From NCBI RefSeq assembly GCF_000143415.4, contig NW_003314267.1, positions 2,335,839 to 2,399,838 of the forward strand: a stretch of DNA of 64,000 nt, in the 5' to 3' direction. The notes below the pieces were generated by a model. That model did no database searches and was not told where the DNA came from. It was given only the letters and a program-made list of their open reading frames with translations. Every line of letters begins with the position of its first letter. Within the stretch, counting starts at the first letter, position 1. The stretch is from Selaginella moellendorffii. Taxonomy: Eukaryota > Plantae > Lycopodiophyta. Shown here piece by piece: positions 12-56,323 of this stretch. The position numbers were made by a program, and so were the translations under genes.

Positions 12-969
12 TGTAAGCCAATGTTTTTGTATATATACCGATTCCTAAATCTCTTTCAATCCCCTTTCCCGAGTTAGACTGGACTTAAGGTTTGGCTACA
101 CTCCCTACAGGCACAAGTAGCCAAGCACACAAGGCCTCTAGATTTCTAACATCCTTTGGTACAACAAAACTTGCTTCTAAATCCTAAGCCTTGGGTGCAA
201 CACTTGCTTTGGGACACCAGAGGAAAACACTATGGCCTAACGGCCCGGTATGGGTACCTTTACTCCCCCACTACCATCCCGAAGGGAAGGCCTAAGCCCC
301 TAGGAAGGGGCGAGGACTAATGAGTCACAAGGTACTTAAGTAGGGCACCACTCCACATAAGCCAGGAGCACTGTAGTTGGTTTCCCTTCTAAGAATGGGA
401 GCTGGTCTTGAGCATTTCCTTGGGTGGCCCTTTTAACACCACCCAAGTCCATGCTCACTCCCACCCGAGGCCCCTTGGCCCCAGTCTCAACCTCAAGTCA
501 ATTTGGAAGCACCACTAGAGAGTTCTTCCAAGATTAGTTCCTAGACATCACTATCCCTACTACACTTTTGGAACCCCTTGTAGCCCCCCCCCTTCTAGAC
601 ACATGCTTTGGGCTTTCACCCCTCAACCTGTATTAGTATTCAGACTCGGTCTCGGACTCGATCTCGGACTTGACCTCAGACTTGGTCTCGGACTCAACCT
701 TGGACTCGATCTTGGACCCGATCTCGGATTCTGTCTTAGACTCGACCTTGGACTCAGTTTCAGACCTAATCTCGCATTTTGGACTTGGTTTCGAACTCGG
801 TCTCGAAGTCGGCGTCGGACTCGATCCTGAACTTTGTCTTGAACTCAGTCTCAGAGTCGGTCTTGGACTCGATCTCATACTCGGTCCCATCCGATGAACT
901 CTTTATTATTTCGGTCGTGCCTTCAGGGATCCTTTAGCCTACAACATCTCGGAGAGTTAGTTCCTTACA
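12..969 (-). repeat. 3' LTR of Ty3/gypsy chromovirus (LTR-A)
   Basis: Termini TGTAAG (12) and CTTACA (969) form a perfect 6-bp inverted repeat. Colinear with 6196-7320 apart from a deletion of about 150 bp near the left end. On the minus strand it is preceded by a purine-rich tract (GGGTGGCGGAGT, 970-981), a likely PPT. Confidence 0.9.
640..895. repeat. Degenerate 6/12-bp tandem array (GACTCG/GTCTCG/ATCTCG) inside LTR-A
   Basis: Repeating CTCGGACTCGAT-like units; source of the low-complexity ESEIESET/GLDLGL ORFs. Confidence 0.9.
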
Positions 970-1389
970 ACTCCGCCACCCATAGGAGAAATTCAACACC
1001 CACATTGAACGTCTCTTTTTAATCCTACGACTTGTTGACCATATCTCCGAGGGCATCCCCCCACTTAGCAGTGTGCCTAAGTTAGCTTCTCCCGCCAAGA
1101 GTATGACAACGAAATATAGGTGTCCCTATACCCCTCACCTCACCATGCCCTAGTATGGGGTGGGACTTGAACCCAACCTTTCTTTACTAGGGGGTTGGGA
1201 CTTGAACCCAACCTCCGTAGAATACATTTACGGATTCGACATTCTCATAGGGAGTCTGGTGTAGTTCCCTATGCCTGGTCAACCTAGCTAACCCATGGTA
1301 ATTAGCTTACTTTCGGTGTGCTTTCGGGTCCCAATATATGCCATTACTCAATTTCACATATTGATGCTTTAATTGAATTTTGCATAAGT

Positions 1390-4300
1390 ACATAGAGTTC
1401 TATCTTGCAAAAATTCCTTCACTAGGACTTGCGTGTTCGCCAAGTTCTCCTTCGGTTCCTATGTTGCTTCGTAGTGTAGAAATCCTTTCCACTTCACATG
1501 GAACTCTCTCACCTCACGTCCTTGTCGCTTGCTCTTGCGCGCATTGAGGATGGCCTTGACTTCGTATTCCTCTTCCCCTTGAATAACTTTAGGTAAAGGT
1601 TTTACTTGGTCCTTGCGAAGCGGATCCTCAAAGTACTGCTTGAGTAAGTTCACGTGGAACACGGGGTGCATCTTCCCCATCTCTTGAGGAAGTCGGAGAC
1701 GGTAAGCCACTTTACCGATTCGCGCCTCAATCTCGTAAGGCCCCACAAACCTGCTTAGGGAACTCAAGATCAATTCATTTACAGGAATACATGCATTTTT
1801 ACCTTTGGGTCAACTTCCAACTGATCCCACTTGGTAGCCTGAGGTTCTTGGTGTTCAGCCACACTTTCTCCCCAGTTTGGAACTCTACATCCCGGCGCTT
1901 TTGGTTCGCGTACTTGGTTTGCCTTTGTTAAGCCTGTTCCAAGGAATCCCTCACTAGATTCCAAATGCTGAGTCTTTGGACTGTGAATGCCTCCACTGCG
2001 GGTAACTCTCCATGATACTCGGCCAAGCCGAGTTCCACAGGACTTTCAATAGCTCGCCCATTGATGACTTCCCATGGACTCACCCTGATACTCGAATGTG
2101 GTGAGTTGTTATAACACATTTCCGCAAGTCCCAAATGACTTACCCAATCGGTTTGGTCTCTTGAGACATAGCATCGCAAATAATCCTCCAGCTACCTATT
2201 CACCCTTTCCGTTTGTCCGTCTGTCAAGAAGTGTTAGTGCCATCAAACTTAACTTAATACCCAATACCTGTATATGGGTGATAGGCTGTGCTGAATTTCA
2301 ACTTAGTGCAATATTGTTCTAAGAGAGTCCTCCAGAACCTACTAGTGAAGATCTTATCTCGATCTGAGATGATCTCTTTCAGCCTTCCCCACACTCAAAC
2401 CACTTGTTCAAAGAAGAGCTGCGCCATACCTTCTGCATCCACTTTCGTTGTCGTGGGTATGAAATGTGCCATTTTCGAAAATCGGTCCACCACCACGAAT
2501 ATCGTATCAAACCTTGCTTGGGGGGAGTCCCGTGATGAAGTCCATCGTAAGACATTTCCACGGACGATCTAGAATTGGGATGCTTTGCAACAAGCCCCCA
2601 CTAGCCTTAGTCACGGCTTTGACCTGTTGACATGTTAGACATGTCTTTACATAGTTTTAGACGTCCTTAGCCATATCTGGCCAATGGTACTTCCTCTTGA
2701 GTAAGCCTATCATCTTGGGCACTCTGCCGTGTCCCGCAAGAGGTCCGTCATGACACTCTTCTATGGCTACCTTCTTTAGTTCCCCTTCTGGAACATACAC
2801 CCTCGTTTGCATGTAATAGATGAGTCTGTTGCATTTTGCATAGCCCGTTTTCTCTTCTGTTGGCAGCTCACCTCTTTGGTGAGCTTCCCGTGCCTCTAGA
2901 TTCCTCAGCAAAACTTCTTGGGCTAAACCATCGTTCTCATATGCTGTCCACACATCGTCCCAAAAGGTTGCTGTCACATTGGATATCCCCAACCTCAAGC
3001 TCGCTTTTCAACTTAGCGCATCCGCCACGATGTTGCTCTTCCCAGGCTTGTACAGAATCTCGTAATCAAACTCGGTCAAGGCATTGGCCCACCGACCTTG
3101 TTTCCCTCTCAGGTCGGGCTGTGACAGGAAGTGTTTCATTGCCACATTGTCCGTGTAAACCTTGAAGTGTTTCCCAAGGTAGTGTTGCCACTCCTTGAGT
3201 GCCTTGACCACCGCAAACAATTCCTTTTTGTGGGCAGGCCACTTCCATTGAGCCTTGTCCAACTTCTTCGAGAAGAATGTTACTGGATGGTTGTCTTGCT
3301 TCAAAACTGCGCCTAACGCAAAATCCGAAGCATCTGTTTCTACCTCAAAGTCCTTACCAAAGTCTGGTAATGCCAACACGGGAGCCTTCCTCAATTTCCC
3401 TTTGAGGTGGACGAATGCCGCTTCGCATTCTGCTGTCCATACCATCTTCCCTTTTCCTGTTTGGTCCGTTAAGGGCAGGGCTACTCTCGAATAGTGTCTG
3501 ATAAACTTTTGGTAGTAGTTGCATAGCCCCAAGAATGCCCTCAACTCATGTACATTCGATGGTCGCTCCCATTTCTGGATCGCTTGGACCTTCTCCGGGT
3601 CCACCTTGAGCCCATCCTGGCCCACCACATGCCCGAGAAACTTTACCTCTTGTTGAGCAAAGTCACATTTGCTCTCTTTAGCATACAATTTGTGTTCCCT
3701 TAGTTTCTCAAACACCTTCGCCAAATGTTCGGCATGCTCTAGCATTTTGCTATAGATCAAGATGTCGTCGATATAGATGACCACAAAGTGATCCAGATAG
3801 GGTACAAAGATATGGTTCATCAATGCCGAAAACGTTGCCGACGCATTGCACAGCCCAAAGGGCATCACCAGAAACTCAAAGCTCCCATACCTGGTTTGAC
3901 AGGTTGTCTTCTCGACATCTTCCTCTGCTACCTTGATCTGGTAGTATCCTGACTTCAAGTCAATCCTTGAGAAGTATTTTGCCTTTCCCAACCTATCGAA
4001 CAGGTCCTCAATCCTTGGCAAAGGGTACTTGTTCTTCTTTGTATATTTGTTGAGCAACCGGTAGTCTATGCACATGCGTATAGATTCATCTTTCTTTTTC
4101 GTAAATAACACCAGCGCCCCATACGGCGACTTGCTCAACCTAACATACCCTTTGTCCACCAACTCCTCTAGTTGGCGCTTGAGCTCCTTGAGTTCTTTTT
4201 CGTTCAAACGATAGGGGGGACGAACCACAGCCTCAGCACCCTCAACCAGCTCAATCTTATGTTTTATCGGTCGTGCGGGGGGCAACCCCGCTGGTAGCTC

Positions 4301-6136
4301 CTCCGGCATGGTATCCTAGAATTGGTCCAACACCCGCTGGATCACTAAAAGTACTTCTTCCGTTCCTGTCTTTTTGTCACTCTTCACCGAGAGTAAGCAC
4401 AAAAATGTTACCTTAGTTTCTTTAGTGAGTTGTCCTCTCGTGGACACCAGGTTTAAGTAGGAATCTTTGGCCTTGCTTTGCCCTACCTTTAGATCTTGGG
4501 CCTCCACCCTAGATCTTCTTCTTTGGGCATTCGCCAGTACCACAAGATTTCTACCTTGTCTATGTAGGGCTAGCACGAACCGATTGAACCAATCCATCTC
4601 GAAGATCACGTCAAATCCCGCCATGTCCAACACGATGAAATCCATGTCCACTTTCCATGTCCCTACTTCGACTCTCGCTTGTCGAAGTACCTCATCAGTG
4701 CTTTGGCTACCTTGAACAAACTCTATAGTCCTTGGTTCACCTAGTTGCTGCACCGTTAGTCCAGCTTGCCGGACTATGTCTGCAGCCACAAAATTATCTG
4801 AAGCACCTGTGTCAATAAGGATCTTAACAAAGCTACCTCCGAGCTTCCCTCAGAGGGCTAGTAGATGTCGCGAATGACTCTCTACCAAAGTTTCTCGTGT
4901 AATGAGTAACTTTGAGTTAGGGACTGGATCACATACCTCAGTTTGGATTTCACCCGACTTGATGGCCATATTGGTTCTGGCCTTCTTCGAGTAGGGACAT
5001 TCCCTCGAAAAGTGTCCCGCTTCACTGCAGTTGTAGCATATGTTGTTTCCTACGCTGCTATACAACCTGACCTTCTTATCTGTGGGTTTGTCTCTTTTCG
5101 TTTGACTCCCCCACGTACTCGCTCGCTGGCCACCAGATTTGCCTTTCTGGAACCCCGAGGACTCATTCTTAGAGAAACTCTTCTTGAATTTCCCTCGGCT
5201 ATACGTTCCTCTTGGTTTGGCCCCTTTGCTAAACGTGGACCCCGATCCCGTCGTGTTTCCCTTTCACAGGTTATCGTTGAAATGCACCTTGATGGCCGCA
5301 TCCAGCGCTTCCTTGTAGTTGGTCGAGTTCCACCGCATCACCTCACCGCAAGCCCAGGTTTGCAAACCTAATATGAAGGCATGGAATGCGTCCATATCCC
5401 CCATGTCCGTGACAAGTATCCTCTTTGCCATAAACCCATTCACATATTTTTGAATGGTTCTGGTCTACTTCAGCCTACTCAACTTGTCCCTTAGATGCAG
5501 AGTAGCATTCGGAGGAACGTAAGTCGCGCGGATCCTCGCCTTCATCATTTCCCAAGTGGCCACCGGTCTTTCGTTGGCCTCTGTCGTTCTCCACCAAGAC
5601 TTGGCATTATCTGCCAAATATGGTTTTGCATATGGGACCTTCTCCGAGCTTGGTAACCACAACACTCGGAAGTAGTCCTCCATATCATAAAACCAATCTT
5701 CCACCACCTTATAGTCATTCACTCCCTTGAAGACCGGTGGGGGCTTTGGTTTGTACTTGGGAACTGCTTAAGGGACTGATTCCACTTTGGTCTGTTCGAC
5801 CTTGTTTGGTTCTGCCTCAGTCCCTACTAAAGGGTCCGCACCCTCTGCGCTGCCAGCATCTGTAGTCTTTTGCTTTTTCGTCCGCTTCTCGTCACGCTTT
5901 AACTTATGTACGAGAGTCTCTAGCAGGGCATTGGTTTGTGCCAATTGTCCTTCTAGAACGTCCAATCGAGCCTTGGACGACCGAACCTCACCACCAGACT
6001 CCTGTTTGGAAGTTGCCTCACTGGAGTTCTCCTCACGCAAGGATTCCTCATCCATAGCCTCTTGTTCGACCGGAGGCTCCAGCTCTGGAGGAGGTTCCGT
6101 TTCCGCCTTGGTTCGTTTCCGCCTTGCCTTTGCCAT
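1390..6136 (-). pseudogene. Disrupted gag-pol polyprotein (Gag, PR, RT, RH, INT, chromodomain)
   Basis: ORF fragments 5768-6136, 5465-5722, 4850-5065, 4316-4789, 3008-4309, 2657-2998, 1928-2179 and 1459-1773 are separated by stops or frameshifts. An insertion of about 40 bp interrupts the integrase HPQTDGQ motif near 2230-2270. The 3' end is approximate. Confidence 0.9.
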
Positions 6137-6180
6137 CTCCCAGCAATCCGCCTCTATCCTTCGCTAGAATTGAGGAAAAG

Positions 6181-6192
6181 GCTCCAATACCA
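6181..6192 (-). other. Primer binding site, tRNA-iMet type
   Basis: Minus strand reads TGGTATTGGAGC, 10/12 to the canonical TGGTATCAGAGC, 3 nt from the LTR end. Confidence 0.85.
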
Positions 6193-6195
6193 AAT

Positions 6196-7320
6196 TGTAA
6201 GCCATAAATTTTTCCTTTCCAATTTGCCGGCTTACCTTGTCTATCCAACCAACATTGCCTTGGCTTGTGCTAAGTTCTCTCACCAAGGTTCCCGCCTATT
6301 GTACTAGCTCCTAGTTGGTCCTACTTGATTTCAGCTACTCACTGCTGTATGAGCAACGAAGCATTAGCCATCCATCCACGGATTCCCAAATCTCTCCCAA
6401 TCCCCCTCCCCAAGTTAGACTGGACTTAAGGTTTGGCTACACTCCCCGCAGGCACAAGCAGCCAAGCACACCAAGCCTCCAGGTTCCTAACACCCCTTGG
6501 TACAACAAGACTTGATCATGGGACCCTCTAAATCCCAAGCCTTGGGTGCAACACTTGCTTCGGGACATTGGGGCGAAACACCGTGGCCTAACGGCCCAGT
6601 ATGGGTACCTTTACCCCCCCACTTCCATCTCAAAGGGAAGGCCCAAGCCCCTAGAAAGGGCGAAGACCAATGAGTCACAAGGTACTCAAATGGGGCACCA
6701 CTCCATATAAGCCAGGAGCATCGCAGTTGGTTTCCCTTTTGGGAGTGGGAGTTGCTCTTGAGCACTTCCCTAGGTGGCCCCCAAGCCCATGCTCACTCCC
6801 ACCCAAGGCCCCTCAGCCTCAGTCTCAACCTCAAGTCAATTTGGAAGCACCACTGGAGAGTTCCTTCAAGACTAATTCCTGGACCTCACTATCCCTACTA
6901 TACTTTTGGAACCCCCTGCAGCCTCCCCCCCTTGGGAGACGCATGCTTTAGGCTTTCACCCCTTGACCCGTATTAGTATTCGGACTCGGTCTCGGACTCG
7001 ATCTCGGACTCGATCTTGGACCCGACCTCAGACTCGGTCTCGGACTCGATCTCGGACTCAATCTCGGACCTGATCTCGGACTCGACTTCGGACTCAACCT
7101 CGGACTCGGTCTCGGACCCGATTTGGATCTCGGACTCTGTCTCAAACTCGGTCTCCGATTCGGCCTCGGGCTCTATCCCGGACTCTATCTCGAACTCAGT
7201 CTCAGAGTCGGTCTTGGACTCGATCTTCAACTCGGTCCCATCCGATGAACTCTTTGTCATTTCGGTCATGCTTTCGGGGATCCTTTAGCCTACGACATCT
7301 CGGGGAGTCGGTTCCTTACA
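6196..7320 (-). repeat. 5' LTR of the chromovirus (LTR-B, 1125 bp)
   Basis: TGTAAG...CTTACA termini, adjacent PBS, and the same hexamer array at about 6980-7240. Confidence 0.92.
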
Positions 7321-10300
7321 ATGAGTGCATTGTATTCTATATGACCTGTTTTTTCTTCTGTTGGTAGCTCACCTCTCTGGTGAGCTTCCTGTGCCTCTTG
7401 GTTCCTTAGCAACACTTTTTGTGCTAAACCATCATTTTCATATGTTGTCCGCACCTCGTCCCAAAAGGTTGTTGTTATGCTGGACATCACTAACTTCAAG
7501 CTTGCTTTTTGACTTAGAGTATCTGCCACGATGTTATTCTTCCCAGGTTTATATAGAATCTCGCAATCAAACTTGACCAAAGCATTAGCCCACCGACCCT
7601 ATTTCCCTCTCAGGTCGGGTTATTACAAGAAGTGTTTTGTTGCCACATTATCCATGTAAACTTAGAAGTGTCTCCCAAGGTAGTGTTGCCACTCCTTGAG
7701 CGCCTTGACAACCGCAAACAATTCCTTCTCAGAGCAAGTCACTTTCGCTGAGCCTTATCCAACTTCTTTGAGAAGAATGTTACTTGATGGTTGTCTTGCT
7801 TCAAAACTACGCCTAACGCAAAATCTGAAGCATTCATTTCTACCTTAAAGTCCTTACCAAAGTCTGGTAACGCTAACATCAGAGCCTTCCTCAACTTCCC
7901 TTTGAGGTGGACAAATGCTACCTTGCATTCCACTATCCATACCATCTTCTCTTTTCCTATTTGGTCCGTTAAAGTTAGGGTTACTCTCAAATAGTGTTTC
8001 ATAAACTTTCTATAGTAGTTGCATAGCCCTAAGAATGCCCTCAACTCGTGTATATTCAATAGTCATTCCCATTCCTGGATCGCTTACACCTTCTTAGAGT
8101 CCACCTTGAGCCTGTCCTTGCCCACCACATGCTCGAGAAATTTTACCTTTTATTGAGCAAAGTCATATTTGCTCTCTTTAGCATACAGTTGGTGTTCCCT
8201 TAGTTTTTTAAACACTTTCGTTAAGTGTTCGGAATGCTCCTCTAACATCTCACTATAGATCAAGATGTCGTCAATGTAGATGACCATGAAATGATCCACA
8301 TAGGGTACAAAAATGTAGTTCATCAATGCCGAGAATGTTGCTGGTGCATTGCACAGCCCAAAGGGCATCACTACTTCCATACCTTGTCCGACATATTGTC
8401 TTCTCTACATCTTCCTCCATTACCTTGATCTGGTAGTATTTTGACCTTAGGTCAATCCTCGAAAAGTATTTCACCTTTCCTAACCTATCGAATAGGTCCT
8501 TAATCCTTAGTAAAGGGTATTTGTTCTTCTTTGTATACTTGTTGAGCAATTGATAGTCTATGCACATGTGTATAGATCCATCTTTCTTTTTCACAAATAA
8601 CACCGGTGCACCATAAGGTGACTTGATTAACTTAACATACCCTTTTTCCACCAACTCCTTAAGTTGGCGTTTGAGTTCCTTGAGTTCCTTTTTGTTCAAC
8701 CGATAGGGGGGATGAACCAGCGCCTTAGCAACTTTGACTAACTTAATATTATGTTCTATTGGTCGTGTGGGGGGTAACCTCGCCAGTAGCTCCTCTAGCA
8801 TGGTGTTTTGGAATTGGTCTAACACCCACTAGATCACTAAAGGTACTCGTCTTTTTGTCACTCCTCACTGAGAGTAAACACAAAAATGCTGCTTTGGTTT
8901 CTTTAATGAGTTGTCTTCTCGTGGACACCAGGTTCAAGTAGAAGTTTTTAGCCTTACATTGCCCTACCTTTAGATCCTGGGCTTCCACCCTAGATCGTTC
9001 TCCCCAGGCATTCGCCAGTACCATAAGGTTTCTACCTTGCCCATGCAGGGCTATTACAAACTAATTGAACCATCCCAAAGATTATATCAAATCCTGTGAT
9101 GTCCAACACAGTGAAATCCATGTCTACTTTCCATGTCCCTACTTTGACTTTTGCTTGTCAAAGTACCTCATCTGTGAATAAACTCTATAGTCCTTGGTTC
9201 ACCCAGCCACTGAACCGTTAGTCCGGCTTGCCGAACTATGTTTATAGCCACAAAATTATCTAAAGCACCTGTGTCAATAAGGATCTTAAGAAAGCTACTT
9301 CCGAGCTTCCCTCGGAGGGTTAGTAGATGTCGCAAATGACTCTTTACCAAAGTTGCTCGTGTCATAAGCAACTTTGAACTAAGGACTGGATCATGTATCT
9401 CAATTTAGATTTCACCTGACTTAATGGCTATATTGGCTTTGGCCTTCTTTGGGTAGGGACATTCTCTCGAAAAGTGTCCCACTTCACCGCAGTTGAAGCA
9501 TATGTTGTTTCCTACACTACTAATAGACTTAACCTTCTTATCCATAGGTTTGTCTATTTTCACTTGACTCCCCCATGTACTTGCTCACTGACCACCGGAT
9601 TTGCCTTTCTAGAACCCTAAGGACTCATTCTTAGAGAAACTCTTCTTGAATTTCCCTTTGCCATATGTCCCCCTTGGTTTAGCCCCTTTGCTAAATATGG
9701 ACCCCAACCCTGTTGTGTTCCCCTTCCGTAGGTTATCAATGAAATGCACCTTGATAGTTGCATCCAACACTTCCTTGTAATTGGTCGGGTTCTAATGCAT
9801 CACTTTGGCTCGAGCCCAGGTTTGCAAGCCTAATATGAAGGTATGGAACATATCCATATCACCCATGTCCATGACAAGTATCCTCTTTGCCATAAACACA
9901 TTCATATATTCTTGAATGGTTCCAATCTACTTCAGCATACTCAGCTCATCCCTTAGATGTAGAGTAGCATTTGGAAGAACATAAGTTGCACGAATCCTCG
10001 CCTTCATCATTTCCCAAGTGGCCACCAGTCCTTCGTTAGCCTCTATTGTTCTCCACCAAGACTTGGCATTATTTGCCAAATATGGTTTTGCACATGGGAC
10101 CTTCTTCGAGCTCAGTAACCACAACACTTGGAAATAATCCTCCATATCATAAAACCAATCCTCCACCACCTTATAGTCGTTCACTCCCTTGAATATCGGT
10201 GGGGGCTTTGGTTTGTACTAAGGAATTACTTGGGGGATTGATTCCACTTCGGTTTGTTCAACCTTGTTTAGTTCTGCTTCAGTCCCCACCGAAGGGTTCA

Positions 10301-10896
10301 CACCTTCTGCATTGCCAGCATCTATAGTCTTTTGTTTTTTCTTCCACTTTTTATCACGCTTTAGCTTGCATACGAGAGTTTCCAGCAGAGTATTTGTCTA
10401 TGCCATTTTAGGACATCCAATCAAGCCTTGGACAACCGAACCTCACCACCAAACTCTTGTTTGGAAGTTTTTGCACTAGAGTCCTCCTCATGCAAAGATT
10501 CCTTATCCATAGCCTTTTGTTTGACCAAAGGCTTCAGCTCTAGAGGAGGTTCTGTCTCTGCCTTGGTTCTTTTATGCTCTGCCTTTGCCATCTCCTAGCA
10601 ATCCTTTGGTACAACAAGACTTGATCATGGGACTCTCTAAATCCCAAGCCTTGGGTGCAACACTTGTTTCAGGATACCGGGGGGAAATACCGTGGCCTAA
10701 CGGCCCAGTATAGGTACCTCTACTCCCCCACTATCATCCCAAAGGGAAGGCCCAAGCCCCTAGGAAGGGGCGAGGACCAATGAGCCACAAGGTATTCAAG
10801 TGGGGCACCACTCCACATGAGCTGGGAGCACCGCAATCAGTTTCCCTTTTGGGAGTGGGAGCTGCTCTTAAACACTTCCTTGGGGGGCCCCTCTAG
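7321..10896 (-). mobile_element. Second, more decayed copy of the same chromovirus (partial LTR, gag, PR, RT, RH), interrupted by LTR-B
   Basis: 7321-10600 is colinear with 2820-6150 but has many more stops and frameshifts. 10601-10896 matches the LTR interior and runs into the N gap. Confidence 0.92.
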
Positions 10897-10996
10897 NNNN
10901 NNNNNNNNNNNNNNNNNNNNNNNNNNNNNNNNNNNNNNNNNNNNNNNNNNNNNNNNNNNNNNNNNNNNNNNNNNNNNNNNNNNNNNNNNNNNNNNN
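10897..10996. other. Assembly gap (100 N)
   Basis: Run of 100 N. Confidence 1.
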
Positions 10997-18956: not shown

Positions 18957-21275
18957 TCACTTTCTAGCCGTCGTCGTGCGTTTCTTCTCGTTGTCCAATT
19001 GAACAACGTAGCTTCTCAAGCTCCGCTCTTCGATCTGCGCGTTACAAAGCATATGTCGCTAGAGAAAATCGAAGCAGGACAATGGAAGTGGAGAGATCTT
19101 ACCTCCAATGTCGCTATCCTATCTAAGATCTCTCCACATTCCTGGAGAAGTGCCTTGCCTTGCGATGATACATGAGCCAGCTGACAAACAATCTCGTTCG
19201 TCTTCTCAGCCTACGAAAAGCACCAAGCACGAGAGATAAGCGCTTGCTAATCGTTACAAAAGCGCTGGTGAAACGAAACAAAACAAATCCGGAGGAATCA
19301 AAACATACCCTGGGGAGCAACTCTCGTGTCGTCGATTCTAGTGGTACCATTGCATCGCCCAGTAAAGTCAATGCATTTTGAAGCGCTGGAATGTCAACCT
19401 GGTATAAAAGGTAACACTTTTAAGAGCCAAGAAAGGAAAGCAGCTCCTTTACCTTTGCTCCGCCAGTAACCGGGACTTTCAAGGTTGCAGCTTCCAAGGC
19501 TGCAATGAATCCAGACAGAGCAATCGCATGCTCGGGCTCTAGCTCTTCCCATTCGTCCAAATGCTCACCCTGCAAAACAAGAGCTTCAAAAATATTTCAA
19601 GGCAAGAAGAAAAAGTGTGAAGCCTACATGAGCCGCAATCACCGCACGAACTTTCAAGTCCTGCTTTGCTTTTTGCAATCTGATGCGCTTCTCCGCTACC
19701 CGGCTTTGCAAATCAGAAATTTGCAACGAAGCGTTGTACAACATTCGCTGCGAGCAGCCACAAGGAAAAGCGTTAGCAACAAAAGAAAATCAAAAGTTCG
19801 AAGGTTTTCTACTTGGTATGAAGCACACATACTTCTCCAGTGGCCTTCTGAGCGCTCAACGTCGCCTGTGAACGAGCATTCACGTATCGCCACTGCAACC
19901 ATCGATTGTGGAGAATCCGGAGACACAGTGCCTCGTCCTGTTGACTCATTGCCCTTCGACCAGTCGAGCTATCATTCCCGAAGTTGAGCATGCACGCCAC
20001 ACTACCCGGACGAACTCCTTGATAAAAACCAGCAGCGCCACCACTAGGCAGGGCTCTCGTTCTTGTCGGACTCGGCAAACCTCGCGAAGGAGATGAAACT
20101 TTGGAAGGAGACGAAGGTGGCGGCGATGGCTGTGGTGCTACTGTGGATGAAACAGCACGCACAGGAGAGTATACCCAAGACGGTGCCTGACTCGGCGCTG
20201 GAGTACTCGCAGTCGAAGATGGAGCTGAATTGCCGCCGCTGGCATTGCCACTCTTGTTTGATCTTCGGTTGCTCGTCTTGGATCCCAGAAACTCTCCCTC
20301 GGGCATCGATGATCTCAGCTGGTTCACGTCCGAGAGCCTTCGAATCCGACTCCCCAAGTCTTGCCAGAACCTCGCCGGCACCACAGTTCCTCTCGCGGCC
20401 TTGCTCGGCCTAGAGGAGCTTTTCTCGCTGTCGAGAGAGCTCCTCTGAGAATCCAAAGAACTCTTGACGCTCTCGCCAGCGTCCGAGTCGCAGCTTGCCA
20501 GATCCGCGTCGTCCGGAACGCTTCTCACGCACCTTGTATCGGTCTTAGTCTCGTCGCCCAGGGAAGAGGAATCCGCCGGCTTGGATGGTTTCTTCGTCGG
20601 CTCTAGGAGCTTCCCTGTGAGCTGATTGAAGCTCCGCGCTGGAACGAGGCAGCGATTCCCTTTGGTCCCTATGCTCGACGCTCGACCCATACTTAGATCC
20701 AAGCTCCGGCTGATGGATTTCCCATTCGCCGTCCCGCTCCATCTCTGCGATTCGAGCTTGCCGCCGCCCACATTCTCGATCGGCCTGGCATTCTCCGCTT
20801 GATCCGCGCCCTGGCGGCTCCTCTTCCTCTCCGGCGTTGCCACGCGGGGCCGATTTGCCGCGGGCTTGAGGGCGTGATCAATCTTCGCCTTGTCATCGCA
20901 GAGAATCGCGCCCTGGGAGCTCCCTGTCACGATATTCTGGCAGGAAGACCACACCTCCTTGGCAGCACCGCGCTTGTCATCGCCATTGCGCTTGCGCTCG
21001 GCCGAGATGGCGCGCTTGGGAGGAAGATCGAGAGGAGCTGGAGCGGCAGGAGCGTCGCCAAGGCGGCCGACATTTGGGGATGGAAATCTGCGAACCGTTG
21101 GAGGAGGGGGAGGAGGAGGCGCTGCCGCCGCTACTCCTCCTCCCGATCCAGCGATCTTGTACCTGGATGAGACTTCCCTATTCCGCGGCTTTCTTGACAC
21201 GCCCACATTGCTCTTCTCTGCGAGCGCCAAAGGATCTCTCTCGTTTTCCAGCTCCAGCGTGGCCGCAACCATCAT
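18957..21275 (-). CDS. QWRF-motif protein (AUGMIN8/SCO3/EDE1 family), multi-exon
   Basis: N-terminal REVSSRYK, VPARFWQD, LRILHNRWLQWRYVNAR. Later exons encode LKVPVTGGAK|VDIPALQNAL, ALLQECGEIL and IEERSLRSYVVQL...ARK, with the stop at 18957. Confidence 0.88.
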
Positions 21276-21499
21276 CGCTGTGCCATGCCCGCCCGGAAGA
21301 AGAACCACAAGAGGCAGAAAACCCTAGAGCTGCCGACCTAAAACCCCTGCGATTCTTGCGACGAATTGGAGATCTGGAGCGCTGCGCGGATCCAGATCCA
21401 TGTTCTTGGTCTGCAAGCGATGGGACGCCGCCGCCGCCCTAGAGCGATCCATCGCTGCTCCTCCCGCGTGCATGCTCCCTCCAAATCCACATTCATATG

Positions 21500-42030: not shown

Positions 42031-45000
42031 AGTGAAGTGTGCTATTGAGAGGAATAATTTATCATCCTCGCGTGACCAAACAGGCATTTGAGAGATTGTA
42101 ATCGATCGAATCGAATGGTTTTTTAATGCAATGTCTGGCCATATCCCAATGGATTCGTTCATAGTAAAGCTGGATCTTTATTTATTTATAAATAGAGATT
42201 GTGGACAAGATGGCATATTTTCTCTTCTCGCAGAGGATCGGGAATCTTTCCTAGGTTCGTGGAGTGGCTCAAGTCCAAAGACCAATAACTGTGTACAGGG
42301 GTGATGTTCTTGTTGTCGTTGCTTATACGCTCAATACTATTTAGCTCGGACACAAGCTTGGCAATGGACTCCTTGGTACCGTTCTAGAAAAGCCAATAAA
42401 GAAAATGTTAAGACCCACAGTGGATAGACACGAAGCACCAGAAAAAAAAAACGCAAAAAAAAAGAAGGTACTTAAACATTTCCAGTTTCCTCCAACGAAG
42501 AACTGTCAAGGAAAGAAGAACGCATCGAATCAGAACGAGTAAAATTGAAGAAGAAATCTACTAATGTAAGATCCATGACCCTAAATTTCATCCAAAAAGC
42601 ATGAGATGGATGATGTCGATTTCCCCTGTTAAAGACAGTCAAGACTAACTAGAACAATGGAAAAGGTAAAGAGAATTCTGTTATTGTATTTAAGGTTATA
42701 AGCTAACCTTTTTCTTCTTTTGAATGCTCTAATGCTTTGGCAGGATTGGAAGCTTGTGGGACAAACAATCCAAGTCGGTTCGAATCTACATGGCACAGTA
42801 GGGATGGATCCATATGTCAGGTTTGGGCTGCTCCTTCTTTGTCCTCTCACCTTAGCTGCTCTTGGGTTTGCCCGGCTTGTCAAAGTGCAATATTTTTGCG
42901 GCAGGATTGCTCAACACAAAGAGATGTTATGCGTGGCCTCTCCAATGATTTTTCTCTGTGTTAGCCTTCTCAGCCGTGACAGAAATGGCCTTTATCTTTC
43001 TCATACATATGCTTTTGTTTTCAAACATGTACGGGAACAATTGCTATTATGCAACTGTTGGCAATGCAGGCCAAGATTCTTCAACCCAACCCACCCAAGA
43101 AGGTGGCAAACTCTTTCTTGTATCAAGAATCTATTCAAACTCATTGGAAACCTCTCTTAATACTTCTCTCACACTTGGGATAACTGTGCTTTTATAGCTG
43201 GTCATGATTAACTAGATTCCACTACAAAGTAGGGCTAAGCTTGAAATTCTCTCTAGACACTTTGGAGCTTCTTCCATCACACTTAAATATTTACTATCAC
43301 TGGTAAAGTGATGCAATGGCTGACTTTGGTAAGCTGATTAACCACCACCACATTAATAGCATTGAAACTTGCAAGCTTGAGATAAAATTTATTATGATTG
43401 ATGTAAATTGAGTTTAAGCTATCCAAGTGGCTTAAAAACTTTGGGGATGTTATTATCTCCTTTTTGATCTATTGGTAAATACTAGATTTCTTCACCTAGT
43501 TCTTTACCTCCTTCTACAGCCCTTCTAATAAATTTTTTTTTCACTTTAAATAGTATGTGTATATTATACTAGTACCTTCAAACTACTTTATATTTTTAAT
43601 AAAAAATATTTGATTAAATTTTTAACTTCTCTGTAATCATATTAATTTTTAGTAAAAAATAGTTACAGAATTTTAATTTTTTCCGAAAAAGTAGTTAATT
43701 TTGATTAAAAAAAATTTAATCAAATTTAATCACTTTTCTATACCACTAAAATATACAATTACCGACTTGAATGACATTACATAAAGATCTCATTATCTAA
43801 GTATTCTTTGTTTCAATTGATTAAGGTTTTTAGAATACGTGGGGTTAAATTCCCTTGAATTTAAACTATTAACCTTTTGTGAAATAATGATTTGGTGCAA
43901 AATTAAGAAGTTTAGAATTGGGATTACTAAAAATGTCTCTTTAAGAAAATGAGTGTATTTCCTCCCACATATACCTTAACAGAGCAATGACAATAACATA
44001 AATTTATCAAAGTAGTTGAATAAACCTAAGAATGCTCTTAGGTATAGTTGTGCATATATGGCTTCAAATTATTAATGAATTCTCAACACATGAGTATATA
44101 AAATTTAATTATTAATAGATCCCAATAGCCCCAAAACACATGCCAAACACTATATCAGTTTCATGTCATGCCTTTCAACTTGACAATTGCCCTTACTATT
44201 TGATGAATGACATTTTCAAGAGCTTTATAATGGTTTTTCTTTAATGATATCCTTATTTATAGCATGAATGTAAATAAACATCTAAAAAATATTTTCCAAC
44301 GGCTGAAAGAGTTCTTATTTATTGCTAAGTTTTCTAAGAGCACATTTATGTTACTGAAAGTTGAATATTAGAGGGTTTTGGATTGCAAAAAGCTTACAAC
44401 CAAATCCAAGAGCCTTTAGACCAAAACTTCATCATGACATTTTCAATCCTTGGGATGTGAAATTTATTTTTCACAATGAGCACATTCATGATATAGTCTT
44501 CATAAACTCTTGTTTATATAGAACCAAGCTTTTATAGCCAAGCAGCTGCATGGAAATAGTATATACATACTCAAGGTCATGAAATCTCATTTTGGCATCC
44601 TAGAAGTGTTCCAAGTTTAAGGCCAAGGGATTTGTGGAGCATACCCTCAAAAGAGATATGTATGGAATTCACAGGATGGGCTACTTGATGTGTATGAGAG
44701 GGAGCTCCTATAATAATAATACATAATATAGTAATAATATTCATAGGAACAAGTGTTTTGCTTTGCAATGTTATTCAAGAGGATGAGTAAAGAAATTGGT
44801 AAAACCAATACAATATAAATCAATTGGTATAATCTTAGTCCTCCTGGAACAACTTTGCAAATTATTAGTAAGACTAGTACTTGCCTAGAAGCTGCACAGT
44901 TAGCCAAGGTAAATTTAATACTAAAACTGATGCAATGCATCATACTAATCATTGTGCTATATGATATTTAGTATATATTTGTTCTTCTTTTCCTGCTGGA

Positions 45001-45640
45001 TAACAAAGGAAAAACTCTTGGTGAGATTTTTTTTCTTCCACAAAAAGGAAGCATGATATCTATTCCCAATTTGAGCAAATTATTTCAAGCACCCAAGCAA
45101 TGCTATGTCATCAAGCACATGCATTCTTTATTGTAGTGTTTAATATTAATTCTGAAATTAGAGTTTTTTTGTTTGTAAAGTGTAAGTGAAGCATTTGGCA
45201 AAGGGTAATATGGGTGGCAATATCACTTGACCATGCTGACCACACATAGCAATGCTCTCATTTTTAAAATGTGATGCATTAGAAAAAGATGATAAGAAAA
45301 AAAATTCAAATTTTAAAATTTGTGAATCTTTGTATATAGTGTGACTTGCTAGTGTGGTGTGTGAAGATGGAGATGGTGTAGTGGATATTGCTTGATGTGT
45401 ATATAGTTCATTTTGATTTGAAGTAATTTAAAGTGGCTTAGGGTGTTTATCAGAATTATTAGTATTTAAATTCTTATCAAAATGATTGGTATTTCTTATA
45501 GTTCTAAGAAGATGATGAAGGCGAGGCATAATTTGAAAATGTCGAGTATAAAGCTAGAAAACTATAGCTTATACAAGTTCATGTTTGTAAACAAACTCAA
45601 ATTTGTAAGAAAAATATAAAATTTTAATATATGATAAAGC

Positions 45641-46299
45641 TATAAATAACTAAAGAGAATGATTTAAGAGATGATTCATGGGGTTCAAATATAAAGGGAA
45701 AGGGCCCATGAACAAGAGTGCACCCCCTTTTCCAATTGGTTAAGGGTATTCAGATATTTGGGGTTAAACATATTTGGGTTTGAATAATATTGAGTTAGGA
45801 AGTCCAAACTCATGAGCTTACATTTGGTATCGGAACGGTCTCAGGTCCGACTCTTATTGGTTGGCTAAAAGAATTACACCACATATTAATTTATATTTGG
45901 CAGGTCCAATTTGCTCCCGAGGGGTAGGATGTCAAGAGAGCGGGGCTCTTAGAAAAGCTATGGCTTTCAACTTTTGTTCATAAAAGCGTAAATTTGCAAG
46001 GAAGTATAGTGGGGGTAGGATGTCAAGAGAGTGGGGCTCTTAGAAAAGCTATGGATCTTAGCTTCCGTTCACAAGGGTGTGAACTTTTCAAAGAAGTATA
46101 GTGGATTGTAAACAACCAAAAAGAATAACTTGAGAGACGATCCATGGAATTCAAATATAGAGGGAAAGGGCTTATGAACAAAAGTGCGCCCCTTTTTCCA
46201 ATCGGTTAAAGGTTTTTGGATACTTGAGGTTAAATGTCTTTAGGTTTGAATAGTATTGGGCTGGGTGACCTCCTGGGAAGTCCAAACTCAAGGCTTACA
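45641..46299 (+). mobile_element. Cassandra-type TRIM (non-autonomous LTR retrotransposon with 5S rRNA-derived LTRs), 659 bp
   Basis: Direct repeats at 45641-45822 and 46107-46299 (T[G/A]TAA...CTTACA). PBS TGGTATCGGAAC at 45825-45836 (tRNA-iMet type). Purine-rich tract ending GTGGAT before the 3' LTR. No coding capacity. Degenerate TSD AAAGC/GAGGC. 5S rRNA segment in the LTRs. Confidence 0.88.
46218..46283 (+). other. 5S rRNA-derived segment (A box, intermediate element, C box) inside the 3' LTR; not an rRNA gene
   Basis: TGGGTGACCTCCTGGGAAGTCC (46262-46283) matches plant 5S rRNA as recalled; upstream GGTTAAATGTCTTTAGGTTTGAATAGTATTGGGC aligns to AGTTAAGCGTGCTTGGGCGAGAGTAGTACTAGGA. Both ends of a 5S gene are absent. 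Confidence 0.88.
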
Positions 46300-47939
46300 G
46301 AGGCTAAGGATATAAACAAACACAAACCTACTGCATACTTGGTTCTCAAGAATCTCTAGTGCAGCCACAAAGCGATGGTAAAAAATTGCATTAAGAAAAG
46401 GGTGTGCCACGAACTAAGAAGAAAAACTATTATGTGAAGCAAGAGATCAAAACTTGTGACGTGCCAAATACAAATTTGATCTAGCACTTTTGGGCAATTA
46501 AGATTTCCACAGCATTGCAAGGCATTGAGGTTCTCACCGCCTTAGCCACAACAGTGTCAGATTAGTTGCCATAGCTCAAGAATTTCTAGTGCTGCCACAA
46601 AGCGATAGTAAAAAATTGCAAAATCGATTCCTTTGTTCAGAAAATCACTCGAGACCCTGGGCAAGGAGATGAGGAAGTTGCAAGAGCTCATAGCACACTG
46701 CAGATTCAAACTCATCCCACTTCCATGCTTGCCATTGGCACTACCTGCAAAGCACTTAGTTCAAGGCAACTCTTGCCGGCATGGGAATGATACAGAATGG
46801 AGTGAGGACGCGTCGTCTTGACAATAACTTCTCCAATGAACTCCTGCTACAAATTGCTCATACAGTTGGGGTTCCAGTGAATCCAGTGGCTCTATGCTAG
46901 GAGCTCTTGTAGTTTAAGAAGGAAAAGGAGATGTAAGTTTTAAATAGCACAAAGTGTAAGAGAGGGATTTTGAGTTTCTTCTCTTTAGCATTTTTCACTT
47001 TTTCCTCTTTTTTTATTTGTTTGTTTCTCTTCTGAGTTACCAAAGTATTCCTCAAACTTTTTACCTTCTACTTTTCTTTGAGCATTTATCTTTCTCCACA
47101 ATTACCCAGTTTGGGCATCTTTCTCTTTGTGAGTTTCTCTGCAAAGCATGGGGCTAGGGCGTTGGGGCAGAGATATATGGGAGATTCTTAGAGATTTTTA
47201 GAGATTGAGAGCACGATATAGCATTTCTCTTTAATATAGATCTCTTCCCATATGGAGAGATCAGCATTGCTCGACACAATTCCTCTCTAGTTCAATAGAG
47301 ACCCTTCTTTACCTTTTGGTAAAGTACTAATTTTAGTCATCTGACTTTAATTAGATGATCAATTAAAGTCTTCAGTTATCAGTTCATACATTAGAGATAC
47401 CAAAGAAAACAGCTACAAGGATTTCATCAAATGTAAGTAGCATCATGAATGAGTTCATAGTGGCATACCTTTACACCAAAATATGACAAGAGGTTTTTGC
47501 ATCCATAAATTGCTTAAGAAAGCGGTTAGAAGGAATAATTCCCAAGTTTGACTCTCTTACAATATATTGATTCTAACATAGAATTGGCTGTTGCATTTCC
47601 CCTTCAATCGAGAGAGAAGTTTGTAAAACTGTTTTAAAGTTTTCTTTGTGATTAAAGATTTTGGTCATAATCTTAATTACAAGCATACTAAATCTTACCA
47701 TCACAAACGGTTTGCACTTTCATTGAGGAGACTAATAAAATCAAGCCATGTCTTGGCTTTAAATAAATACCTTTTTGTCTGTCATCCGTGTGTGACATGC
47801 CAAACTTCTTGTAGCAAATTGCCATGCAATACTTGCCACATGGCTAAGCAATACTGAGTCAGAAATAACAAACCATGTTCAAGAGCTTGGGGTGGGACTC
47901 TCCGTTCGAGAATGTGAATTCCCAGCTTTCATTTCCTGT

Positions 47940-49532
47940 CTATGAATCAAACACTGCTCCAAATGCCACGATCTTCTTTGTCTTGCACACGTCGCGAACG
48001 GCCTCCGTGAACTTCGCGTTGGACACCACAAAGATGGCCTCTGCCCTAAACTCCTCGTAGCTCGCCAATGCGATCTCCGGCTTAGGCCGCCCCATCTCCG
48101 CGGTGTCGTAGATCGTGTGGGAATGTTGGAATACGCGATCACAGATCTCGTCCCCGTAGATTCCCCGGTGCTTCTTGGCGATCCAGACGACGTGAATGGC
48201 GACGCGATCGCTGCCAATGTGTGGGAGGATTGGGGCAATTCCAGCCCCAGTGCCCACGCAGATCACTCTCTTGTAGGCATAGACAGAGTACATAAACCCT
48301 AGCGGGCGGTGCCACCGGATGAAGGCCTTGATCGTCGTCTCTCCCGAGGAGGATTTTGTGGATGGAGGAGCTTCCAGATCCGGCGGTGCCGTGAAGAATT
48401 CGTCCACGACCTGCGCCCGGTTCTTGCTCACGGATCTATCCAAGCGATTAAGGCAGCGCTGCGCAAGGTTTTGTGTCCAATCTCCCGCCACTCCCACAAC
48501 CAGGCCGTAGGCGCGATTCTCTCGATCGCTGAAAGCCACCGAGAATGCGTGCCACTCTGTGAGATTGAAGGAGATCTTGGCGAAGGCGCCGGGGCGGGCC
48601 TTGCCGTGGAGGCGGACGATCAAAATATTTCCCTGCCTGCCAACGCGGACATGGACGCTCTGGCGCTCGATCAAGAACCACGAGTAGAACACGAGAAGGA
48701 GACAGGCTATGGCGATCGTAGCGCTGGCGATAGCAATTCCTGACAGATTCCAGCGAGAATGGAAGAATTTCCTGAGCAAGATCGCCGTGAGGAGGAGAAG
48801 GAGTGACCAGCCCAGGTATCTGTGGACTCTCTCGAAGAGATTGTGGTGCCGGACCCTAACGATCGGCATTGCCAGGATCGTCATGATCGAGAGACCGGCG
48901 ACGAGCACGGCCAGCATTGCGACGTTCGCGGCGTCGATTCCATCGGCAATGTGGCCATGATCGCCGCGATTGGCGATGGGGAGGATCAAAGCGATGGTCG
49001 TCCACACGAGAAGCATGATCGCGCAGCCCGTGTGGATGCCGCCATTGCAGTGGAGCATTCGATTAAAGAAGTATTTCTTCCATGGGATCCGGACGACGAT
49101 CTTGTAAAGCAGCAGCAGCACCGTGCCGTCGCGGATCGCCGCTACCGCCAGGAGATTCACAAGCGCCATGGCGGTGGCCAGCTCCGCGCGATTGACGCGA
49201 AGGTCGTCCTCATCGATCGAGAAGAGGGCCGCGACGATGGCAAGATTGACGGGGAATATCACGAGCCACCACACGTTGTAGAGAGTGAATCCAAACCTTC
49301 TTCCCCATCCAGCTCCCAGACGAGCGGGCTGCTTCTTCTCCACGATCGCATTGAGCCGCTTCTCCATCCGGCGCGTCGTGGATTCCTCATGGAGTTCTTG
49401 GGCGGCAAACTCCATGATTCTCTCGATGGCAGTGGCAGAGCAGCAAAGCACCGTATAATGCCGGAGACGCCAGACCCGCTCTCCGATTCTCCCTCTCTCA
49501 ATTCCTTCGGCTGGAACTTTCACATTTGTCAT
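47940..49532 (-). CDS. Intronless membrane oxidoreductase: ferric reductase-like transmembrane region plus FNR-like FAD/NAD(P)H domains (NPS12/adenylate-forming reductase C-terminal module family)
   Basis: Uninterrupted 530-aa ORF with about 6-7 hydrophobic helices, candidate heme His motifs HCNGGIHTG and HHNLFERVHRYLGW, then EWHAFS, VAGDWT, VGTGAGIAP, IYDT..GRP, IFVVSN and terminal AFGAVFDS. The true start may be a downstream Met. Confidence 0.8.
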   Translation of the reverse strand: MTNVKVPAEGIERGRIGERVWRLRHYTVLCCSATAIERIMEFAAQELHEESTTRRMEKRLNAIVEKKQPARLGAGWGRRFGFTLYNVWWLVIFPVNLAIVAALFSIDEDDLRVNRAELATAMALVNLLAVAAIRDGTVLLLLYKIVVRIPWKKYFFNRMLHCNGGIHTGCAIMLLVWTTIALILPIANRGDHGHIADGIDAANVAMLAVLVAGLSIMTILAMPIVRVRHHNLFERVHRYLGWSLLLLLTAILLRKFFHSRWNLSGIAIASATIAIACLLLVFYSWFLIERQSVHVRVGRQGNILIVRLHGKARPGAFAKISFNLTEWHAFSVAFSDRENRAYGLVVGVAGDWTQNLAQRCLNRLDRSVSKNRAQVVDEFFTAPPDLEAPPSTKSSSGETTIKAFIRWHRPLGFMYSVYAYKRVICVGTGAGIAPILPHIGSDRVAIHVVWIAKKHRGIYGDEICDRVFQHSHTIYDTAEMGRPKPEIALASYEEFRAEAIFVVSNAKFTEAVRDVCKTKKIVAFGAVFDS

Positions 49533-50329: not shown

Positions 50330-51808
50330 TCAACTGACCACAGTGGCAGTGTCCTCTTCAGTGTCGCCGTCAACATCAGTGGCAGTGTCCTCTTCAGTGT
50401 CGGCATCAGCATCCACCCATACCCCACAAGCAGCCTTGATATTTCTCACTTCTCGCCAGAAAAACCGTGGGACTTGTGAGCTCGTAGGGACCTTAACATC
50501 AGAAAAGCCAACAATGGCCAGCTGCAATGGCTCATTGCTCTTGACCAGTAGTGAATTTGAGTCGAATCTACCGAGTAGCAGCCCCCTCTTATGGATCTTC
50601 TTCAGTATAGGGACTGCTGCTTTCGCGTAAACGTCAGCAGGATGCCCCCGTACTAGCTTGTTTCCCTCGTAGCTAAGAACCAACACCGCAAACATCTTTC
50701 CACACATAAAGCCGTACTCCATGAGCTTGGGAATGCCACGACCTTGGAGAGTCTTGAGCTTCTTGTAAGCCCAGATTTCCTTAACAAAGGCATGGAGCTG
50801 ATCCAAGAAACTTCTGTATCCCATATCTCTGATCTTGAGCACAACATTCTCCCCACTGGTACGAACTTGAGCATGGATGACATCGCAGCAAGCCTTTGAC
50901 AGCTTTGTCCCCAAGACAAAGTCAGTCACCTTCCAGAATTTGACCTTCTTGTGAATCCCACCAGAGAAAAACTTCTTCCCTACTGTCAATGCCCGGAAGG
51001 AGTGAGAGTTGTCATCGCCGAAGCTGGACGCCTCCTGTTGAACCATGCACACCACAGCAGCCTTCATAGATGCCGAGTCCAGTATCCGATGCACAGTCTC
51101 GCCTTCAGTGATAATCTGCGGGCGCTGCTGCCCAACCGAGAGCGCCATAAGATACCAAAAGCAGCCTAGCTTTGCTTCCACTCGTTTGAGTGGACGTGAG
51201 ATGGCCAGCTTCCCTGAACCATCGCTGAAACAGAACCAATACAAGTCCCGCGTCGTGAAGAAGCCGTAGTTGAGCCCGGCAAGCGCTAGGAGCTCCCGCA
51301 GGCGGTTCAGCACAGCCCAAAAACAGCTTGTGGGAGACGATTGTAAGGCCCCGGCAATCTCCTTTGGTGTCAGCTCGGGCAGGAAAGAAGGATGGTCCAC
51401 GAGACCGAGCAAGAGGCCGGTCTTGTGACCAGTCCGCTCAAAGAACACGTTTGGATGGCCAAGCGCGCTTGTAGCCGTGTCGCTTACGTTAAAACCCAAG
51501 CTTTGGATGCTCTCCATCACGTCTGCGGCCATGCTGCATGACTCAGGCTGCCTCTCTTCCCAGTAAAAGGCGCCGGTGTTTGGGAGGCGAGCCATAAAGC
51601 GCGCAACCTCGGCCTCAAAGCTGTCCCAAGAGGCCAGCGACCATGGGCTTCCATCGCCACCAAAATCCTGGTTAATGGGGTCGTCACCTGAAAAGGGGAC
51701 CGGCGCAGGGATGACCATCTTGGAGACCTCGGCCGCAGTCAGCGTATCATCGTAAGTGACTGCTGTTTCGGAATGCAACGAAAGAGCTGCTGACACTGCG
51801 GCATCCAT
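50330..51808 (-). CDS. Intronless fungal/Crinkler-type kinase-like protein with degenerate catalytic motifs
   Basis: 492-aa ORF. VVLKI...KEIWAYKKLKTLQGRGIPKLMEYG and ILKKIHKRG match the E..AY..L..LQG..IP kinase type. An upstream LNYGFFTTRDLYWF motif and an acidic repeated tail (DTEEDTAT twice) are present. Confidence 0.6.
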   Translation of the reverse strand: MDAAVSAALSLHSETAVTYDDTLTAAEVSKMVIPAPVPFSGDDPINQDFGGDGSPWSLASWDSFEAEVARFMARLPNTGAFYWEERQPESCSMAADVMESIQSLGFNVSDTATSALGHPNVFFERTGHKTGLLLGLVDHPSFLPELTPKEIAGALQSSPTSCFWAVLNRLRELLALAGLNYGFFTTRDLYWFCFSDGSGKLAISRPLKRVEAKLGCFWYLMALSVGQQRPQIITEGETVHRILDSASMKAAVVCMVQQEASSFGDDNSHSFRALTVGKKFFSGGIHKKVKFWKVTDFVLGTKLSKACCDVIHAQVRTSGENVVLKIRDMGYRSFLDQLHAFVKEIWAYKKLKTLQGRGIPKLMEYGFMCGKMFAVLVLSYEGNKLVRGHPADVYAKAAVPILKKIHKRGLLLGRFDSNSLLVKSNEPLQLAIVGFSDVKVPTSSQVPRFFWREVRNIKAACGVWVDADADTEEDTATDVDGDTEEDTATVVS

Positions 51809-56250: not shown

Positions 56251-56323
56251 TGCGGTGAGCGTGGATCGAACACGCGACCTTTAGATCTTCAGTCTAACGC
56301 TCTCCCGACTGAGCTATCCCCGC
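56251..56323 (-). tRNA. trnF-GAA: tRNA-Phe (GAA)
   Basis: GCGGGGATAGCTCAGTCGGGAGAGCGTTAGACTGAAGATCTAAAGGTCGCGTGTTCGATCCACGCTCACCGCA, 73 nt, canonical plant cytosolic cloverleaf; T7 Pol III terminator at 56241-56247. Confidence 0.97.

Follow-up and report, generated by a model that had tools for sequence, protein, structure and literature searches.

A probable fossil Cassandra-type TRIM with a 5S rRNA-derived control region from the lycophyte Selaginella moellendorffii

To our knowledge, no LTR retrotransposon lineage other than Cassandra has been validated as driven by a Pol III promoter, and its age, the number of its origins and the identity of its helper are the questions on which a family from a lycophyte bears. 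The lineage is defined by an "about 70 bp core" of 5S (10.1101/2023.07.14.548913). This 5S module provides an internal promoter for Pol III, while reverse transcription is primed by tRNA-iMet and from a PPT, the proteins come from autonomous elements, and integration produces a 5-bp duplication (PMC7215508). In the angiosperm Cassandras the 5S core falls within 25-75% of the LTR, and even the short Asteraceae versions have a median LTR of about 270 bp (10.1101/2023.07.14.548913); the fern versions are distinguished by a PBS that lies only 8 nt from the 5S part (PMC7215508). The recorded hosts of Cassandra are monocots, dicots and ferns; gymnosperms are not among them (PMC7215508; 10.1101/2023.07.14.548913; PMC10886601). 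The lineage has been traced to the ancestor that ferns and angiosperms share or, as a guess, to "early vascular plants" (PMC7215508; 10.1101/2023.07.14.548913).

In S. moellendorffii, Gao et al. 2016 described eight TRIM subfamilies, SmoRetroS1-8, which together comprise 10,158 copies and 1.19% of the genome, and tied one of these subfamilies to a Ty3/gypsy partner, SmoLTRA4 (PMC4717578). None of the eight was named Cassandra, and TRIM families other than Cassandra were stated to be free of 5S sequences (PMC4717578). Kojima 2024 reported a tRNA-carrying TRIM from the same species, and none carrying 5S (PMC10886601). Our literature search recovered no report of Cassandra in lycophytes, and an entry for such a family may already exist in Repbase, Dfam or SmoRetroS; as far as the searchable literature goes, a lycophyte family of the Cassandra type is new.

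Here we describe an element found in a 64-kb stretch of DNA, which is called the window below. We consider it very probable that this element is a fossil, non-autonomous Cassandra-type TRIM of about 580-660 bp, which bears the 5S internal control region in its LTRs and is a member of a high-copy S. moellendorffii family. The initial annotation, made from the letters of the window, had already supposed the host to be a lycophyte; one ORF of the window is identical to an S. moellendorffii protein, which settles the point (last line of the feature list below).

Anatomy of the element and its 5S-derived core

The element spans 659 bp (45641-46299) and is devoid of genes, the longest ORF that overlaps it being 52 aa, in line with the initial reading of it as having no coding capacity. 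Its parts are the following, given with the positions of the window and the evidence for each, and followed in the last line by the ORF outside the element that identifies the host:

45636-45640, plus strand: left copy of the TSD, AAAGC (sequence; an empty-site contig joining 45635 to 46303)
45641-45822, plus strand: 5' LTR, 182 bp, TATAAAT...CTTACA (BLASTN and alignment to the 3' LTR)
45762-45773, plus strand: box-A-like stretch of the 5' LTR, decayed, GGTTAAACATAT (alignment to plant 5S genes)
45825-45836, plus strand: PBS of the tRNA-iMet type, TGGTATCGGAAC (10/12 to the published Cassandra PBS)
45837-46089, plus strand: internal domain, non-coding, inside which a 91-nt tandem duplication starts
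46090-46106, plus strand: PPT-like purine-rich tract, interrupted (sequence; directly 5' of the 3' LTR)
46107-46299, plus strand: 3' LTR, 193 bp, TGTAAAC...CTTACA (BLASTN and alignment to the 5' LTR)
46228-46283, plus strand: 5S-rRNA-derived core of the 3' LTR (Rfam, Cassandra motif, plant 5S alignment)
46228-46239, plus strand: box-A-like part of this core, followed by an 18-nt spacer
46258-46270, plus strand: box-C-like part of this core
46300-46304, plus strand: right copy of the TSD, GAGGC (sequence; empty-site contig)
19809-21308, minus strand: QWRF-domain ORF, 100% identical over 96% of its length to SELMODRAFT_407120

The two LTRs recover each other in a BLASTN comparison with an E of about 1e-36, and their alignment has the same base at 145 of 181 sites (80%), the other sites being 32 transitions and 4 transversions; a further 13 columns are gapped (K2P 0.25). 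Both end in CTTACA, as the initial annotation had recorded of its two direct repeats of 182 and 193 bp. At the opposite terminus the 3' LTR begins with TG and the 5' LTR with TA, a difference of a single transition. The 5' LTR is further marked by a deletion of 12 nt relative to the 3' LTR, which falls between 45794 and 45795 and takes in the C-box; for this loss the initial annotation had proposed a deletion of about 13 bp. The flanking pair AAAGC/GAGGC is the same at 3/5 positions, with both differences being A/G transitions, and agrees with the degenerate 5-bp TSD that had been reported.

Two nucleotides past the end of the 5' LTR begins the PBS, TGGTATCGGAAC, which matches the Cassandra/iMet PBS TGGTATCAGAGC at 10/12 positions and upholds the iMet-type assignment of the initial annotation. 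PBS-like matches occur 3 times in the 64 kb against 4.9 expected, a count that is not above chance; hence, the assignment is founded on the position at the LTR junction and not on the number of matches. The internal domain contains a tandem duplication of 91 nt (45921-46011 and 46012-46104), whose units are 83-84% identical by repeat search and BLASTN, and which Tandem Repeats Finder did not detect. The second unit of this duplication extends into the purine-rich tract at 46090-46106, which had been picked out at the outset as PPT-like and whose junction with the LTR recurs in other copies (see below).

An alignment to Rfam RF00001, which the initial annotation had put forward as a check, gives a match at 46214-46294 of the 3' LTR with 27.8 bits and an E of 0.0022 for the 951 bases searched, a score that lies below the gathering score of 38; the 5' LTR yields no Rfam 5S match. 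The published Cassandra motif (box A RGTTAAGYRHGY, 18 nt, box C RRRATRGGTRACY) is found at 46228-46270 with 3 mismatches and in 0 of 100 shuffles of the window. Likewise, the 21-mer GGGTGACC to GTCC is unique in the window, and 0 of 100 shuffles match it. For comparison with real plant 5S genes we used the plant 5S rDNA arrays returned by a metagenome scan for the 5S core together with the PBS. From box A to GTCC the 3' LTR aligns to these genes ungapped, with 41/56 positions the same, and at 46262-46283 it has 22 consecutive bases identical to plant 5S, in agreement with the 22-nt match to the C-box region, preceded by an A-box-like stretch, of the initial annotation. In the upstream alignment the first 49 nt of 5S score 17/49, no better than random. 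The identity downstream, set against the random score upstream, delimits the captured module as the internal control region with the 13 nt that follow it. The recognisable 5S in this copy is therefore only about 56 nt: box A, the 18-nt spacer with the intermediate element, box C and 13 nt. The 100-nt 5S-like stretch of this decayed copy folds no better than its shuffles (z = +0.88).

The metagenome scan itself recovered four plant 5S rDNA arrays and no Cassandra relatives, TGGTATC being present in the spacer of these arrays by chance. The arrays (JGI metagenome contigs Ga0209489_106539, Ga0209489_109507, Ga0209700_110341 and Ga0123340_1010853) are long tandem arrays in which the 5S rDNA units, many of them mutated, recur about every 290 bp, and are presumably host-plant DNA.

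The 5S core occupies positions 122-177 of the 193 of the LTR (63-92%), ends 16 nt from the LTR terminus and stands 19 nt from the PBS. We treat this position as descriptive rather than defining, because the fern PBS has been reported at still closer range to the 5S part. As characters of Cassandra we took a non-coding element of less than about 1 kb, LTRs at least 74% identical with TG...CA termini, a box A-IE-box C arrangement in the LTR, an iMet PBS and a PPT. The element agrees with these in size, non-coding nature, LTR identity, 5S region and iMet PBS, and at the place of the PPT it has the interrupted purine-rich tract; the TG...CA termini are intact in the 3' LTR only, the 5' LTR being one transition off.

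Ancestry and a candidate helper

The lycophyte/euphyllophyte split lies about 400 My or more in the past, and a lycophyte representative is the deepest vascular-plant outgroup with which one ancient origin of Cassandra can be tested against repeated capture. One possibility, which we advance tentatively, is that the Selaginella family is a true orthologue of the fern and angiosperm Cassandra, both being parts of one lineage that predates this split. Such a lineage would have persisted on both sides of the split as a non-autonomous parasite, and the question of one or several origins raised by Maiwald et al. would be decided for a single origin in the earliest vascular plants. The other is that the family has the same anatomy and mechanism but stems from a Selaginella-specific TRIM that independently captured a part of the host 5S promoter, a case of convergence like that of Ajax; this too we regard as conceivable, short of calling it probable. 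In favour of independent capture is the lack of any part beyond the 5S core and the PBS for which a counterpart in known Cassandra elements could be named, although even the angiosperm Cassandras have almost nothing in common outside the 5S core, their overall identity being only 44% (10.1101/2023.07.14.548913). A further point in its favour is an LTR that is much shorter, at 193 bp, and that carries its core at 63-92% of its length and not in the middle. Ajax provides the precedent of a box A-IE-box C module that was captured independently (PMC10886601), and a Selaginella TRIM has been linked to a Ty3/gypsy element, as against the Ty1/copia partners in flowering plants (PMC4717578). However, the 5S module and the iMet PBS are the same as in Cassandra, the distance between the two is short here as in the ferns (19 nt and 8 nt, respectively), and the origin preferred by Maiwald et al. 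is a single one, in early vascular plants (10.1101/2023.07.14.548913).

The window also contains, at 37-10900 on the minus strand, a tandem array of Ty3/gypsy elements, consisting of three LTR pieces and two internal regions, with an RT/RNase H ORF at 3008-4309. The gypsy LTRs begin with TGTAAGGAAC (TGTAAG...) and end with GGCTTACA, after which come ATT and an iMet-type PBS, TGGTATTGGAGC (6181-6192). The termini and the type of primer are thereby common to the gypsy element and the TRIM (TGTAA...GGCTTACA, TT, TGGTATC...), a shared signal of only about 6 informative bases between LTRs whose bodies are unrelated by BLASTN. These likenesses raise the possibility that the gypsy element represents the helper lineage of the TRIM, a lead that agrees with the link between a Selaginella TRIM and Ty3/gypsy drawn by Gao 2016 (PMC4717578). 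When the RT ORF of the gypsy element was used as a protein-word query, all the matches came from other plants and metagenomes, and no further TE-rich loci of Selaginella were recovered. The genome of S. moellendorffii is small and finished, and the many copies that it holds make it a convenient place for a helper search.

Copies elsewhere in the genome, the empty site and decay

Contigs from four public runs were placed on a 1551-base stretch around the element at a likeness of at least 80%. The three runs of one sample gave 9134, 8429 and 4308 contigs and a small run of a second sample gave 36; these figures are contigs and not reads, hence not copy counts, and may include related LTR families. 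The summed contig depth over the LTRs and LTR cores is 100-1000 times that of the flanks, and it is also very high over 46240-46291, the part with the C-box. Loose contig ends after the LTR end read CTTACA, TT, TGGTATCA, which is the LTR-PBS junction of other copies, and those at the LTR start read ...GTAGTGGAT followed by TGTAAGC, the corresponding PPT-LTR junction. At the site of the 5' LTR deletion, other copies have GGCTGGGTGACCTCC directly before 45798 and so retain the C-box, which is preceded in some copies by ...TACTAGGAT, as in plant 5S genes, and in others by ...TATTGGGC, as in this copy. Other copies with these two junctions, and 5S similarity extending beyond a single LTR, were what the initial annotation had singled out to be looked for: the former are present in large numbers among the contigs, and the contig depth together with the C-box junctions establishes the core as a feature of the family. 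Further contigs skip from 45915 to 46012, such that other copies have a single internal unit, which places the usual element near 570-580 bp. The element thus belongs to an abundant, high-copy TRIM family of S. moellendorffii.

Within the 64-kb window no second full copy was found. There is a decayed LTR-core fragment of 58 nt at 43808-43865 with a box-A-like GGGGTTAAAT, which is probably what is left of another copy or of a member of some related LTR family. A search with the 40-aa translation of the open minus-strand frame of the LTR produced no candidates for further copies.

In an empty-site contig, 45635 and 46303 are separated only by GGAA, and the match extends over 224 nt on the left (at 92%) and 44 nt on the right; there is one such contig per run of sample S2, all thus coming from one sample. 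The empty site reads GGAAGC, and as a sequence this would fit an ancestral target GAAGC with one change in each flanking copy, one extra G being unexplained. The characters of a TRIM, i.e., a dispersed multi-copy family, a TSD and an empty site, are hence all present. Most of the contigs over the flanks, at 6-17 contigs per position, differ by 8-10%, which indicates that the contigs counted derive either from a related genotype or from repeats paralogous to this one. The AT-rich flanks (45200-45635 and 46303-46346) are themselves repeated, with the same 6-17 contigs per position at about 90% identity, from which it follows that the TRIM sits in an older AT-rich repeat. The contig depth falls sharply beyond about 46346.

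That only the 3' LTR of this copy has an Rfam match could be explained by an ordinary TRIM in which a 5S pseudogene or a 5S-derived SINE had landed in one 3' LTR. We consider this very improbable: the 5' LTR can be aligned right through the 5S region, where it fails the motif merely for want of the 12 nt that hold box C; other copies have the C-box at the site of this deletion and the contig depth is very high over 46240-46291; and the core has no flanking target duplication. The chance that the repeat pair is a local segmental duplication and not a transposon, as might be thought from a TSD that is only 3/5 identical and from the presence of another local tandem duplication inside the element, is negligible in the face of TG..CA termini, a PBS and a PPT-like tract set exactly at the junctions, the thousands of copies dispersed elsewhere and the empty-site contig.

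By analogy with Cassandra, active members of the family would be transcribed by RNA polymerase III from the internal 5S promoter, and reverse transcription would be primed by tRNA-iMet at the PBS and from the PPT. The proteins would be supplied in trans by an autonomous element, probably of the Ty3/gypsy type, and integration would generate the 5-bp target duplication. Judging from the sequences, the cis elements needed for a Cassandra-like cycle all appear to be present in the Selaginella family; transcription by Pol III, mobilisation by such a helper and a continued activity of the family are inferences from this analogy. Among the public runs, the stretch was found in no RNA run. The copy described here would have inserted into the older AT-rich repeat and then decayed. 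It is dead: its 5' LTR no longer has box C, both LTRs have a decayed box A, and two positions of the PBS and one of the LTR termini have changed. Its internal domain has in addition acquired the 91-nt tandem duplication. The 8:1 excess of transitions between the LTRs fits the deamination of methylated cytosines in a silenced repeat. If 1.3e-8 to 5e-9 changes per site and year are assumed, a range without calibration in Selaginella, the K2P of 0.25 places the insertion roughly 10-25 My ago. To the study of the family the locus itself contributes a documented empty site and a pattern of decay that is dated and rich in transitions.

Several other features lie in the surroundings of the element. 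Just downstream of it is an unexplained 46-nt direct repeat (46345-46390 and 46575-46620), 93% identical and with a spacing of 230 bp. Two ATG ORFs on the minus strand, 47940-49532 (530 aa) and 50330-51808 (492 aa), are found just downstream of the TE island, and neither has a Pfam match or corresponds exactly to a gene on record. Further along, a tRNA-Phe(GAA) gene occupies 56251-56323 on the minus strand (Rfam 66 bits; ARAGORN).

Comparison with known systems

Within the same genome, Helenus-1_SMo is another TRIM that has a 5-bp TSD and, in the LTR, a small-RNA module of the Pol III type, but this module derives from a tRNA (boxes A and B), and LTRs of 120 bp enclose an internal part of 85 bp (PMC10886601). 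Ajax, from nemerteans (Kojima 2024, PMC10886601), resembles the Selaginella family in being a TRIM whose LTR contains only the promoter part of 5S and which has a 5-bp TSD. It differs in its animal host, shows no relation in sequence and is thought to be derived from a SINE3 insertion (PMC10886601).

SmoRetroS1-8 share with the element both the genome and the TRIM class, and the 5S-carrying family may well be one of these eight. Either the family or its 5S content was missed in the catalogue of Gao 2016.

From the described Cassandras the element is set apart by its lycophyte host, by an LTR of only 193 bp, which bears out the initial impression that the LTRs are short for the group when the median of about 270 bp in the short Asteraceae forms is taken as the measure, and by a core at 63-92% of the LTR, which is outside the angiosperm range of 25-75%. 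The short distance of 19 nt between 5S and PBS is a feature that it has in common with the fern versions. The captured piece corresponds in kind to the "about 70 bp core", and the Selaginella family shares with Cassandra its gene-less form of less than 1 kb, the 5S control region in the LTR with its 18-nt spacing, the TGGTATCAGAGC-type PBS, the 5-bp TSD and the high copy number, and has a PPT-like tract before the 3' LTR.
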